From positions 305,087-369,086 of the forward strand of contig CDMY01000466.1 in NCBI GenBank assembly GCA_001179505.1: a DNA stretch of 64,000 nucleotides. Direction: 5' to 3'. The stretch is from Vitrella brassicaformis CCMP3155 (taxonomy: Eukaryota; Protista; Chromerida). The notes beneath the pieces are model-generated. The model was not told the DNA's origin. It saw nothing but the letters and a program-made list of their open reading frames with translations, and did not search any database. A program made the position numbers and the translations under genes. Positions 29,091-36,313 of this stretch are shown piece after piece. Position 1 is the first letter of the stretch. Each line of letters starts with the position of its first letter.

Positions 29091-30395
29091 AACGATAAAG
29101 AAAGTTATGTATCTGCAGCTGACAAACAGCTTGCCGCTCTCATCCACACGGTCTCCCACGCGCACACATTCGCACACAGACAGACACACACGCAATTGCG
29201 ACACGAAAACACATTCGCAGCCATGCACACGAGAAACCCTGCAGGCAGAAACTCCCAACAAACAGAAGCTTGTCGTCGTCCGTGGATTCCACACACATGA
29301 ATAACATAGGCAAGTAAGGTGTGCATGGTAGGGCACATGATATGCAGATGCACTGATATATAAGAGATAGATGCACACACACGAGAATAAAGGTAGGTGG
29401 ATAAAGGAGGACTCACTCACCGAGGTCCTCTCAATTGGCTGGCTGTAAAAATGCCATATATATATGATGCACACGTACGTCTACACAGCCACTGACTTAA
29501 CTGGGGGTCGGTGGGAGGGGTGGCGACACGCGCACACAACACCACACAACACATTCAAAGAGGGAGGGATACGGAAGGCGAGAAAAATGATGAATGATAC
29601 ACACACCGATGGATGCATCACACACTCAGTCAGGACGGGAGGACTTTTCTCGCTCACGCGTGCCCTTCTCACTCACAGACAGACAGACACCATCCCACCA
29701 TCCCACCATTATAAAGCACCCCATCTACCATGAAGCGCAACCGACGCCCCCGCTGTCTGTCATGGTCAGCACCCCGCTGGCCGTCCTGCGGTGTCTCCTG
29801 ACCACTTGTCGATGTCCTCGTTGTGCCATTTCTCTACCCACCTGTGCCCCCCGATGCCGCCCACGCCCCATCGGTCGCCCCAGTTGTTGCCCCACCGGTC
29901 GCCCTGCGCGTTGGATGCCCACTTGGAGGTCCACTTCTCGCCTGCACAACCAGCCAGCAAGGGGACCAGACCACGTGTGTGGCGGTGTGTATGGGTATGG
30001 GTGTGGGTGTGGGTGTGGGTGTTGGTGTAGTTGTGTAGTTTATCAGCTCCATCGAGTGAGATGTCTTCGCCCCACTCTTCCTCCCACTGGTCGCGCTGGC
30101 GCGGCGGCCCGTCTTCTTGGCGCGCTTCTTGTTCTCGTTCTCCTCCAGCCAGCTCTCCAGCCACGCATCGCCCTGAGATCAAACAAAGTGACAGACACAT
30201 AGGGCTCATGGCTGATGGCAGATGGATGGCGGGGTGATAGGACTGACTGACCTGTGCGTTGTGTCCCTTCTTTTCTGCGAACTTGACGAGGCCCTTCTGC
30301 GTGAGCTGCTCGGACCACTGCTCCTCCCACGCGTCGCCGCGACTGATGGATGGATGGATGGAACGACGAACCATAAATCACAAGCAAGACAAGGC
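29091..30395 (-). pseudogene. Degenerate duplicate of the last exons and 3' UTR of the Trp-rich gene (copy A)
   Basis: Near-identical to 31217-32528. A 1-nt deletion at about 30094 (tcgcgctggc vs tcgccgctgg) breaks the KTGRRASGDQW frame. Confidence 0.8.
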
Positions 30396-31068: not shown

Positions 31069-31216
31069 TGTGTCTGTCTGTCTGCGTGTGTGTGTGTGTG
31101 CCACGAGTGCACTCACTCCTGCACACCGACCGCACCCTCTCACACACACCAACCTGCACACACATTTATTACGTACCAACGGGGAGCTGGAAGGACGGCT
31201 CTCCCAAACGACAGTT

Positions 31217-32528
31217 AACGATAAAGAAAGTTATGTATCTGCAGCTGACAAACAGCTTGCCGCTCTCATCCACACGGTCTCCCACGCGCACACATTCGCA
31301 CACACAGACAGACACACAGACTCACACGCAATTGCGACACGAAAACACATTCGCAGCCATGCACACGAGAAACCCTGCAGGCAGAAACTCCCAACAAACA
31401 GAAGCTTGTCGTCGTCCGTGGATTCCACACACATAACATACGCAAGTAAGGTGTGTATGGTAGGGCACATACATGCAGATGCACTGATATATAAGAGATA
31501 GATGCACACACACGAGAATAAAGGTAGGTGGATAAAGGAGGACTCACTCACCGAGGTCCTCTCAATTGGCTGGCTGTAAAAATGCCATATATATATGATG
31601 CACACGTACGTCTACACAGCCACTGACTTAACTGGGGGTCGGTGGGAGGGGTGACGACACGCACACACAACACATCACATTCAAAGAGGGAGGGATACGG
31701 AAGGCGAGAAAAATGATGAATGATACACACACCGATGGATGCATCACACACTCAGTCAGGACGGGAGGACTTTTCTCGCTCACGCGTGCCCTTCTCACTT
31801 ACAGACAGACACCATCCCACCATCCCATCATCATAAAGCACCCCATCAGCCATGAAGCGCAACCGACGCCCTCGCTGTCTGTCATGGTCTGTCAGCACCC
31901 CGCTGGCCGTCCTGCGGTGTCTCCTGACCACTTGTCGATGTCCTCGTTGTGCCATTTCTCTACCCACCTGTGCCCGCCGATGCCGCCCACGCCCCATCGG
32001 TCGCCCCAGTTGTTGCCCCACCGGTCGCCCTGCGCGTTGGATGCCCACTTGGAGGTCCACTTCTCGCCTGCACAACCAGCCAGCAAGGGGACCAGACCAC
32101 GTGTGTGGCGGTGGGTATGTGTGTGGGTATGGGTGTGGGTGTGGGTGTAGTTGTGTACTGTACCAGCTCCATCGAGTGAGATGTCTTCGCCCCACTCTTC
32201 CTCCCACTGGTCGCCGCTGGCCCGTCGGCCCGTCTTCTTGGCGCGCTTCTTGTTCTCGTTCTCCTCCAGCCACGTCTCCAACCACGCATCGCCCTGAGAT
32301 CAATCAAAGTGACAGACACACAGGGCTGATGGCTGATGGATGGCGGGGCGATATGATAGGACTGACTGACCTGTGCGTTGTGTCCCTTCTTTTCTGCGAA
32401 CTTGACGAGGCCCTTCTGCGTGAGCTGCTCGGACCACTGCTCCTCCCACGCGTCGCCACGACTGATGGATGGAGGGAGGGATGGATGGATGGATGGAACG
32501 ACGAACCATCAAAAGGAAGCAAGACAAG
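31217..32528. repeat. Intact copy B of the ~1.3 kb direct duplication
   Basis: Both copies start at aacgataaagaaagttatgtatctgcagctgac (29091 and 31217) and end near gaacgacgaaccat...aagcaagacaag. Confidence 0.9.
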
Positions 32529-35500
32529 ACAGTGGATTTTCATGGCCTGCAGGGGCAATCACCACAGCGGTACGGTACACTTACGCGTTCTGTCCGGTCT
32601 TTTGTGCCATCTTGTGTCCAGGCTTCTCGTTCCATTTCTGCAAGCCGGCCAGCCACAAACATACACACACAGAGAACCCCACATCGATGCATCAGACGCT
32701 CGTGTGTTGGCCCTCCTCCCTCCCTCCCTCCCTGACTCCCTCCCTGTCTTGTCTGTCTGGCTGACCTCCATCCACTTGTCGCCGCTCCCAGCGTTGTATC
32801 CCTCCTTGAAGGCCCACTTCTCGCTCTGGTCGGCGCACTCACCGAACCGATCGGCGAACCAATTCGTCACCTCACGGCCGCCGAACTCGCCAGCCCTGAG
32901 AGGGAGGGTGACAGACACAGTGACAGACACATGTGCTGTGTTGCGTTGCGCAGCGTATGTGGACACGTGACGTACCTCCATGCGGTGCCCTCTTTGATGG
33001 TCTTGGTGTTGCCCGCGCCGTCGTCGTCCCACTTCTCTGTCCACTCCTCACCCTCACCGCCACCCTGGACAAAGACAGAGAAAAGACACATTGGTGAAAG
33101 AAGGTGACTCTCCACTCATAGATCGAGATCGAACTGCCTGCCTTTGGTCTCACCTCAGCCCTGCCCCATTTCTGGAACCATCGCTTGCCGCCCTCGTTGC
33201 CCCACGTCTCGCCCCAAGAGTGAGCCTGTGAGCGACGAGTGACAAAACAAACCGACCGAGTCGCATCTGATCTGCCTCGCTGGCTGACGGCCTGGTCTGC
33301 CTACCTTTCCGTCATCGCCCTGGACGGTCCAGTGCTTGTCGACCCACTCGCCGTCCCCGGCCGGCCCCGCCCCCCACCTCTCGCCCCATTGGGTGCCGTC
33401 GACTCGGCTGCCGAACTTCTCGCCCTCCTTGCTGCCGTCAGCGCGGGTCTCCCAGCGGTCCACCTGCTTCTCCAGGCCGTTGTCGTACCACCTCTCCTCC
33501 TTGGAACGACTCTCACGCACATCCTCGAACCTATGAGTGGGTGTGACGCACACAACAGCCGAATTTACCGCCCTGGTAGGTCTCTCTCTCTCTGTGTGCG
33601 GTGGTCAGGACTCTTACGTACTTTTTGTCGCCCCAGCTGTTGCCCGACCCCTCCCTCCACCACTTGTCCCAGTGGCGCACCCGGAGCTTCAGTATCTCGC
33701 GGTGCTCGTCGGTGGTGCTGGCAGATGCAGCCTCACCCTCACTGTCGGCGGGCTTGGCGATGCGGCCCGTCAGGCAGACGTCGGGCTTCCACGCTGTGGG
33801 GCGGGGCAGCACCTCGGTCTCGGTGCTGCTGCTGGTGGTTGTGGTGGTGGGGAGGTCGTCCCACTTTGGCTCGAAGGACTCGCCCCATCTCTCCCCCCAC
33901 GACATGGAGTCGCTGTAACGGTGGCCGCTCTTCTCACCGTTCTTGACCTGAACAGACAGACAGACAGACAGCAAGGATAATCCAAGCATGGGTGTCCTTC
34001 TGGCTCGCTTCTCTTCTTACGATCTCTTTTGCGGTGCCCTTGATGACGAGTCGTTTCTCTCCGTTTTGGAGTGCGGCGATGACGGCCTTGCTGTCGTCTG
34101 CATGCGCTGCGGCGGCGGATGTGGTCGTGTAGACCATGTCTTCCTCGATGGCTGATGGCGGGCCGTCGGGGGTGTCGAAGGCCGTACACGTCTCCCACTT
34201 GTCGATGACCTTCTCGGTGCCGTTGTCGTACCACTTCTCGCGATACTCCTGAAACAAACACACACCAGCACACAGCGTGTGCTTGTCGTCATCCCACACC
34301 TTATTGATTTGCCTGGGTATTGCCCCACCTACCTGTGACTTGGTGACCTTGCATATGGAGTCGATGTGGTCGTCTGTGGCGGCACCGGCGCCCCTGGCGC
34401 CGCGCACATCGAGGTGGTGGACGTCGACGGCCTTTTCGCCCCAGCTGCCGCCGTCGGGGTGCGACCACCACTTGTCGAGGAAGTACTTCTCGCGGCCGTC
34501 CTCCGCTGTCCGCTCCCACTTCTCGTTGTACTGCGTGCCGTCGTGACTCGTGCCGGCCTTCTCACCCCATCTGATACATGAGCCAGCCACACACGTCGCA
34601 CTATGGGTGATGGATGGTGTTTGGTTTGTACCGGTGTCTTGAGTCAGCGGTTTCCGCCCACTTGTCGACCTCTCTGTCGCCGTCCCTCTCGACCCATCTC
34701 TCGTGCCACTTTTCGCCCAGTGTGTTGCGGCCCTTCTTCTCGCCGCACTTGGTGCCGTCGGCGTTGTCGCGCCACCGGTCGGTCCACTCGTCCAGCACAT
34801 TGCCGCTGCCGTTCACCTCACGGAACCACACCTCGTTGAATGACGTACCCTCGGCATCTGACGATAGAGAGACATGGACGTGTGTTGTGGCAAATGCTGT
34901 CCTTGCCATTGGTTCGTGTGTATTCACCTCTCCTGGTTCGTTTGCCCCGTCGCAGGTTGCCTTGGCGCTCCTCGAACTCGCCCTGGAAGCTGGTCTCGAT
35001 CAGGCCGTGCTCGTCACTCTCGAAGCTGTCGACCTTCTCCTTCTCAAACGATGTGCCCTCCTGATGGACAGGCACGTGAGGGGAAAGGACATGACCCCTC
35101 AGGCCTCCCCCTTGTGTGTCGGTGTTTGTTGTGGGTGGTGTGGTACCTACCTGCCACTGTCTGCCGGTGAGTTCGCACTGCCCCCGCTTGCGGATGGCCT
35201 GAGTGATGGGGATGTGCTTGGTGGTGTGTCCGTCCTCGGCGATGACGGACATGAGTGTCTCCTCGATCTCCTCCTCCCAGGCCTCGATGACCATACCGTT
35301 GCGGTCCACCTTCTGCACGCTCTTGTGGATCTTGAGCGTCAAGCCGTCCTTCTCCCACTTTTCTGTCCACCTGAGGAATGACGCACAGTGGCTGGCTGCG
35401 GTTTGTTTGTGTTTGTTTGGTGGCTGCAGAGCTCACTTGTGTCCGTTGTCTGCGTTCCATCCGTTGTTGCGGCCGCTGACGACCGTCCTCTCCGTCCCAT

Positions 35501-36110
35501 CATCGTTGCGCACCTTGCTGGACACACAGACACATCACACACACACACACACACACACACACAAAGCAGAGGGTGACCTTTGGTTGTGTGTTGGCTTGGT
35601 GCGGGTGGCTCCTACCGCTGTTGCTGCATCCACTTCTCTGCCCATGTGCCATCGCGTGAGCGCTTCTCGCCCCATGTCAGACCTGACTCGTTGCTGTCCC
35701 ACACCTAAACAGACACACACACACACACACAAGCACACACACAGAGTCGTCAACAAAAAGCCAGCCAGCCAGCCAGCCAGACATCTGACCGCCTCCCGCC
35801 CTCTCACCTCGACGTGTGAGTCGTGCTCGTCGACTCGCGCGGTGCTCCTCGGTGCTCTGACACGAAACCGCTCAGGAATCCTCAGCACAGGCTGGTCTTC
35901 ACCCGCAGACGACGAGGGGGCAGCCGCATCCGTCGGTCTCTGGGCGGAGTCTTCATCGACGGTGACTTCGTTGGTGTCTGCGTTGATGCGAAGGCGCAGA
36001 ATGGGTGTGGGAGTGGCGGACCGCCGGCGGATGTCGGGCTTGGACGAGTGCTCCACCGACGCACCATCTCGGGGAGGCTGGGACAGCTGCTGCCGCCGGT
36101 TGGCAGACAT
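31892..36110 (-). CDS. Trp/Glu/Lys/Gly-rich repeat protein resembling plant ESV1/LESV starch-binding proteins
   Basis: About 15 exons with repeated motifs: DEWTDRW, GEKWHERW, VDKWAET, FLDKWWSHPDGGSWGEK, WGERWGE, WTEKWDDDG, WEEQWSE, WEEEWGE, KWTSKWASNAQGDRWGNNWGDRW. No signal peptide. Family similarity is from memory of ESV1 motifs, not from a search. Confidence 0.55.
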
Positions 36111-36313
36111 GACGACGCTCTACAGGATCTGCTTGCTGCTTGGCTTAACGCGGGCGGCGGAAGAGAAAAACCTGCGAGCTCAAAAACGCAGATCTTCGTG
36201 GTGGACTCCCCGCTGCTCTGGGGATAGGCAGAGCTGTGCGTGAGGCGAATGCCCATCAGTGCAGCAGCAATACAGCATGTGAATCAGCTGCACGCATGAT
36301 CCCGGTACAAACA

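Follow-up and report, generated by a model that had tools for sequence, protein, structure and literature searches.

Of the plant proteins ESV1 and LESV, the latter acts by promoting phase transition and the former by stabilising. In published models, these proteins are made of 16 antiparallel strands and are about 70 Å long, with aromatic strips 14 Å apart and acidic strips between them (PMC10219597). According to a preprint (bioRxiv 10.64898/2026.09.25.754361, 2 October 2026), ESV/LESV proteins, termed polysaccharide chaperones, are also present in chromerids, Apicomplexa, dinoflagellates and amylopectin-making ciliates and are absent from glycogen-making ciliates; the alveolate proteins are placed within the ESV-LESV tree and were possibly gained from glaucophytes. 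Here, a gene of Vitrella brassicaformis was analysed within a window of 64,000 nucleotides (nt; contig C466, 305087-369086), which is the whole stretch of DNA studied, and which a preliminary description made from the letters alone had rightly ascribed to a chromerid-type lineage. Its product, CEM15615.1, is supported as a member of the LESV/ESV1 family and probably works as a cytosolic sheet that orders amylopectin.

The coding sequence runs on the minus strand (36110..31892) from the ATG at 36110 to the stop codon that ends at 31892, exactly the limits that the preliminary description had given. Exon borders were derived by six-frame reading from Trp-rich open stretches in changing minus-strand frames, yielding a model of 17 exons (2811 nt, 936 codons) with consistent phases and introns of 61-128 nt, all 16 of which are of the GT-AG type. 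The model is identical to the 936-residue database protein CEM15615.1 (A0A0G4FN54) of V. brassicaformis, named 'unnamed protein product', in which all exon translations occur in order with only split codons between them. Transcript contigs of 3.3-3.6 kb from the Logan assemblies of runs ERR558152 and SRR646408 carried an uninterrupted 2811-nt open reading frame, and the 17 exons were found exact and contiguous in both assemblies. Therefore, the gene is real, expressed and spliced as modelled.

The assignment to the family was approached by several comparisons. A precomputed Pfam match placed CEM15615.1 in PF28232 (PF28232.1, LESV) without a mark, which stands for E <= 1e-5; the same family is recorded for 14 relatives. 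In the ESM Atlas, the three clusters nearest to exon 6 were named 'Like early starvation, chloroplastic domain-containing protein' (PF28232 LESV; scores of 0.89, 0.87 and 0.81), and the whole protein was closest to chlorophyte LESV clusters (score 0.84), the nearest named clusters being 'Like early starvation' proteins of streptophytes and chlorophytes. The Atlas structure search superposed residues 704-936 on a 294-residue chlorophyte LESV model, with 216 residues aligned and a template modelling score (TM) of 0.63 by target; both structures are predicted models, and that of the query had a pLDDT (predicted local distance difference test) value of 0.64. Ten exon stretches and four full-length proteins were also scanned against a copy of Pfam that lacks PF28232, and no relevant match was found.

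The nearest bridge from CEM15615.1 to plant ESV1/LESV is the PF28232 protein of the glaucophyte Cyanophora. With compositional adjustment, BLASTP aligned the Vitrella and Cyanophora proteins colinearly to the C-terminus (E 9e-29), with 33% of the 354 alignment columns, counting gaps, identical and the Trp/acid pattern in register. This colinear similarity favours homology to LESV/ESV1 over convergence; the preliminary description had offered both. A profile of 21 family sequences, run against the Vitrella genome (72,700,666 bases in 1064 contigs), matched only the CEM15615.1 locus and an adjoining fragment. A match on contig C553 (E 0.009) in the own-genome search was taken as noise, as it was absent with the family profile. 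By these searches, the gene is the single detectable LESV/ESV1-family locus of V. brassicaformis and, because it is the sole LESV-like locus of the genome, the chromerid ESV/LESV of the preprint would be this same gene. The preprint covers the same lineages (chromerids and Apicomplexa) and proposes the same glaucophyte link, whereas its main text gives no gene identifiers, architecture or structure, unlike the present analysis.

The composition of CEM15615.1 is dominated by Trp (61 residues, 6.6%), acidic residues (D+E, 19.5%) and Gly (11%). The motif W-x-[DE]-x-W appears 14 times in the full protein, or 13 times when counted exon by exon, compared to 0.80 +/- 0.88 (maximum 6) in 2000 within-exon shuffles, and [DE][KR]W appears 23 times compared to 1.85 +/- 1.35 in the shuffles. 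A unit of about 70 residues is repeated in exons 6 and 10, at 38% identity between the two copies, shorter repeat pieces align to a G-E-K-x-G ... W-x-E-x-W consensus, and many of the Trp residues are invariant or nearly so across the 21 family sequences.

When the full-length protein was modelled with AlphaFold2 from the 21-sequence alignment, 49 strands joined by short turns were predicted over residues 92-928 (mean pLDDT 80; predicted TM, pTM, 0.56), with the N-terminus and the loops 411-421, 462-494 and 537-588 disordered. Residues 589-936 alone (348 residues) gave 24 consecutive hairpin-linked strands at a pLDDT of 95 and a pTM of 0.81. Nearly all the Trp residues (59 of 61), every one of the 14 W-x-[DE]-x-W motifs and 26 of the 27 aromatic i/i+4 pairs lie inside single predicted strands. 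Residues i, i+2 and i+4 of a beta-strand point to the same side, and the distance from i to i+4 is about 13-14 Å. Because of this geometry, each W-x-[DE]-x-W would set two Trp on a common face, about 13-14 Å from each other and separated by an acidic residue, a register that fits the paired aromatic strips of the plant models. The predicted antiparallel Trp/acid sheet, together with the PF28232 match, the Atlas LESV clusters and the superposition, lends support to the ESV1/LESV-like character proposed in the preliminary description, whose count of more than a dozen W-x-[ED]-x-W/DKW repeats also holds.

CEM15615.1 is thus similar to plant ESV1/LESV in its Pfam family, its richness in Trp and acidic residues, its non-catalytic nature and its extended antiparallel sheet as predicted, and in its proposed role of aligning and stabilising amylopectin helices. 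It differs in the size of the sheet, with about 49 strands, 24 of them in the high-confidence C-terminal block, compared to the 16 of the plant models. In these models, the protein is an expanded variant of the sheet, a difference of size and not of kind. The internal history of the expansion was analysed by profile-profile comparison (hhalign) of slices of the family alignment. Slices 277-410 and 422-536 each matched slice 589-700 at a probability of 97% (E 2e-11 and 1.7e-10, respectively), and slice 277-410 also matched slice 701-936 (89%, E 2e-6), while the best match of slice 92-276 was slice 277-410 (53%, E 1.4e-4). It follows from this likeness among slices that the long sheet arose by duplication of the same hairpin modules.

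Searches of the PDB by sequence, with one exon and the 21-sequence profile as queries, found no relatives, and structure searches found no solved relative, the matches being generic beta-meanders only. Two groups of candidates were rejected: Rhs/YD-repeat shells and teneurins, which reached Foldseek E-values down to 4e-9 but with TM <=0.07, a root-mean-square deviation (rmsd) >40 Å and no RHS_repeat Pfam match, and outer-membrane barrels, with an rmsd of 24-30 Å. The lowest-rmsd solved matches were engineered OspA single-layer sheets (Z 9.0-9.2, rmsd 6.6-8.2 Å, 168-216 residues aligned). Borrelia OspA and the extended versions engineered from it (such as 6kk9 and 8xwg) are likewise open up-and-down beta-meanders with both faces exposed, but this is a structural analogy only, as the identity is 7-14% and OspA has neither Trp strips nor a glucan role.

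The distribution of the family was followed with a profile of exons 6 and 10 against 1.84 billion representatives. This search gave 13 matches, in Vitrella, Chromera (Cvel_11216), Toxoplasma (TGME49_206640) with Hammondia, Eimeria, Cyclospora, Rhytidocystis, Ancora and unnamed records (all three from transcriptomes), and one Cyanophora paradoxa protein. Further members from Neospora, Eimeria flavescens and Cryptosporidium (six proteins) came from word searches. One such search, in which the query was the stop-free stretch spanning exons 7-8, yielded no match, as explained by its length window and by how few words were shared. The range found for the family therefore comprises chromerids, coccidia, Cryptosporidium, gregarine-type transcriptomes and, as the sole non-alveolate, the glaucophyte Cyanophora. 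All the matches are in groups that store starch or amylopectin according to the preprint. None from Plasmodium or piroplasms was among the search results, an absence that is weakly supported, since the same searches missed Cryptosporidium until a second query. The annotated genome of the fly Condylostylus longicornis includes a family member of 779 residues (LOC129617018, on a contig of 25.8 kb) that shares 51% identity with the C-terminus of the Vitrella protein; the contig most likely belongs to a gregarine or other apicomplexan parasite in the fly assembly.

As for the ends of the protein, no hydrophobic stretch was found in the first 80 residues (top Kyte-Doolittle 15-residue mean of 0.16), in agreement with the preliminary description, which had seen no signal or transit peptide. 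CEM15615.1 differs in this from the plant members, which have a plastid transit peptide; the lack of one is expected if the starch is cytosolic, and the protein is probably a non-enzymatic, cytosolic one. A further difference from the plant proteins lies in two conserved terminal motifs. The first, P-I-L-R-L (residues 35-41 in exon 1, window positions ~35990-36010), is conserved from Vitrella to Toxoplasma in an otherwise disordered N-terminus; in Toxoplasma it lies near residue 297, behind a long extension, and it is not a cleavable presequence. The second, D-T-x-G-R-P-x-G-C, forms the C-terminus and ends in Cys (31892-31930); in the family alignment it is kept in chromerids, coccidia and Ancora and is absent from Cryptosporidium and Cyanophora. 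It is possibly a site of modification or partner binding.

With these elements, a mechanism can be proposed. Residues 92-928 would make up a long antiparallel beta-sheet with an up-and-down course and about 49 strands linked by hairpins, in which the recurrence of W-x-[DE]-x-W strand after strand would generate paired aromatic strips with acidic residues between them. Such strips would resemble those of plant ESV1/LESV, for which a role in docking double helices of amylopectin and bringing them into alignment has been proposed. CEM15615.1 would then bind nascent or surface amylopectin of cytosolic storage granules, and this binding would promote or stabilise semi-crystalline packing and thereby affect the access of degrading enzymes. 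The present data show a transcribed gene, a product that belongs to the family and is predicted to fold as an all-beta meander, its internal duplication and a set of orthologues, while the geometry of the strips, the cytosolic location, the binding to glucan and the role in granule order are what we infer from them.

Several points weigh against this interpretation. The PF28232 assignment is precomputed, and its record does not show which residues are covered, whereas the Atlas feature scores, being below 0.9, are rated by the tool as leads only. No plant protein was returned by the word searches, including those with the Vitrella C-terminus and the Cyanophora protein as queries, or by the exhaustive profile search. 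The spacing of the strips and the continuity of the whole sheet were deduced and not read from coordinates, with a full-length pTM of only 0.56. The Toxoplasma orthologue has the hyperLOPIT class 'NA' (PMC9729606 supplement), and a search for it in the hyperLOPIT supplements gave no result. In addition, red algae make starch and are reported in the preprint to be without ESV/LESV; therefore, the family is not obligatory for starch.

Alternatively, a true LESV-family sheet could have been repurposed, so that its expanded Trp ribbon bound another polymer or partner, such as a wall or cyst polysaccharide or proteins, and not storage amylopectin. Flat aromatic-rich sheets are able to bind many glycans, the Vitrella sheet is three times the size of that of plants, its N-terminal block (92-276) is weakly related to the rest (hhalign <=53%), and the conserved terminal motifs have no assigned role. 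Repurposing is nevertheless regarded as unlikely, as it has to contend with the lack of a signal peptide for secretion to the wall, with the storage of amylopectin or starch in all the taxa found, with the register of the Trp/acid pattern shared with the Cyanophora member, and with the presence of the family in amylopectin-making ciliates and its absence from glycogen-making ones according to the preprint.

Convergence would require that an unrelated Trp/Glu/Lys/Gly repeat protein scored against the LESV profile through its composition. The repetitive and compositionally biased sequence and the generic beta-meanders returned by the PDB searches are in line with this idea, but it conflicts with the compositionally adjusted, colinear BLASTP alignment to the Cyanophora protein, with PF28232 matches at E <= 1e-5 in all close kin and with the Atlas structural match to a chlorophyte LESV model. 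As an independent phylogenetic study also puts the alveolate proteins in the ESV-LESV tree (the preprint), convergence is considered very improbable. Ordering of cytosolic amylopectin by a LESV-family sheet thus remains the interpretation preferred here.

The Toxoplasma orthologue, TGME49_206640, has 1282 residues, with 55% identity to the Vitrella protein over the last 337, the same terminal motifs and a long low-complexity N-terminal extension. Database entries label the orthologues of Toxoplasma, Neospora and Cyclospora as 'AT hook motif protein', from which a DNA-binding function could be supposed. However, the R-G-R-P core of this motif is present in T. gondii only, at 2 sites in variable loops, and none of the other 20 members has it, Neospora and Vitrella among them; the Pfam scan gave no AT-hook match, and the protein is acidic and predicted to be an all-beta sheet. 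As the core is absent, the AT-hook identity is refuted for Vitrella; a DNA-binding role of this kind has a negligible likelihood, and from the sequences the name seems to be an artefact of annotation that spread to relatives.

TGME49_206640 has been quantified as a protein and is phosphorylated at S209 and S571 (PMC9729606 supplement). In the PP2A-C knockout, in which amylopectin accumulates to excess, phosphorylation at S209 is up 2.7-3.0-fold (PMC9729606, Supplementary Data files 5-7), a rise that may represent a regulatory link. The abundance ratio of the protein in the PP2A mutant (0.24-0.28) was discarded as not specific, because most proteins are 'down' there. TGME49_206640 was not found in the PP1 supplements, and a literature search by gene identifier gave no main-text mention of CEM15615, Cvel_11216 or TGME49_206640. 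A more far-reaching proposal is that myzozoan LESV would be a distinct, threefold-expanded and two-faced Trp ribbon, built by internal duplication (about 49 strands, possibly >200 Å if continuous), that would act as the main non-enzymatic template crystallising cytosolic amylopectin, with TGME49_206640 under PP2A-dependent phosphorylation controlling the amylopectin granules of bradyzoites. This extended version is tentative and we regard it as rather doubtful.

Downstream of the gene, the window contains a partial tandem copy of exons 15-17 (29754..30381, minus strand; profile match E 5e-31), outside the functional gene. The duplication pairs positions 29091-30362 with 31217-32481 at a spacing of about 2.12 kb and 91-98% identity, and the duplicated segment corresponds to the last three exons and the 3' untranslated region (UTR) of the CEM15615.1 gene. 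In a DNA alignment, the copy has a mean column identity of 96% to exons 15-17. Because of a 1-nt deletion in the copy of exon 16, and of the change of its donor GT to AT, the copy seems to be a fragment in decay. It is the upstream, functional copy alone that the transcripts match.

Along the minus strand, the gene begins with a 5' UTR of at least 65 nt (36111..36175), as the 65 nt ahead of the ATG in transcript contig L016 are exact compared to the window. In another transcript contig, L015, positions 1-58 differ from the genome at 17 positions when compared to window positions 36111-36168, with an intron in the 5' UTR, an alternative start or a chimeric assembly as possible causes. Exon 1 (35808..36110; residues 1-101) has no Trp, is mostly predicted to be disordered and holds the P-I-L-R-L motif, and the first Trp hairpins are encoded by exon 2 (35616..35704), which has AG/GT borders and is exact in complementary DNA (cDNA). 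Exons 3 (35437..35517), 4 (35151..35370) and 5 (34928..35060) follow, supported by the gene model and cDNA, as are exons 7 and 11 to 17. The copy of the 70-residue super-repeat in exon 6 (34632..34857) is the one whose nearest Atlas clusters are LESV. After exon 7 (34333..34570), AlphaFold2 places a disordered loop in exon 8 (34021..34248) and the Thr/Ser-rich disordered loop of residues 537-588 in exon 9 (33622..33947). The high-confidence C-terminal sheet begins at residue 589, in exon 9, and includes the super-repeat copy of exon 10 (33305..33530). It continues through exons 11 (33154..33225), 12 (32976..33064), 13 (32766..32895), 14 (32585..32637), 15 (32371..32461) and 16 (32164..32293) to exon 17 (31892..32067), which carries the conserved G-R-P-x-G-C ending and the stop codon. 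The 3' UTR has at least 689 nt (31203..31891), defined by the tail of L015 with 0 mismatches to the window. Many of the introns (e.g. 35705-35807, 35518-35615 and 32068-32163) consist largely of TG/CA-type and C-C-A-T-type microsatellites.

The idea of ESV/LESV in alveolates is already known, being public through Pfam 38.1 and the 2026 preprint, which already reports these proteins in chromerids and apicomplexans; the preliminary description, which had called this a little-described part of starch biology, has been overtaken in this respect. What is new here is the identification at the level of the gene, the threefold-expanded sheet produced by internal duplication and the decayed partial tandem copy. 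The value of the analysis is one of confirmation and detail and not of discovery, with a low novelty of concept and a modest one in the details. Granules of amylopectin are characteristic of chromerids and of coccidian parasites in their persistent stages, and how they turn semi-crystalline in the cytosol is understood only in part. The Vitrella protein CEM15615.1, with its orthologues Cvel_11216 in Chromera and the misnamed TGME49_206640 in Toxoplasma, is a candidate for a non-enzymatic organiser of these granules, and the far greater length of its sheet makes it a natural experiment on the relation between sheet length and glucan ordering in the mechanism of ESV1/LESV.

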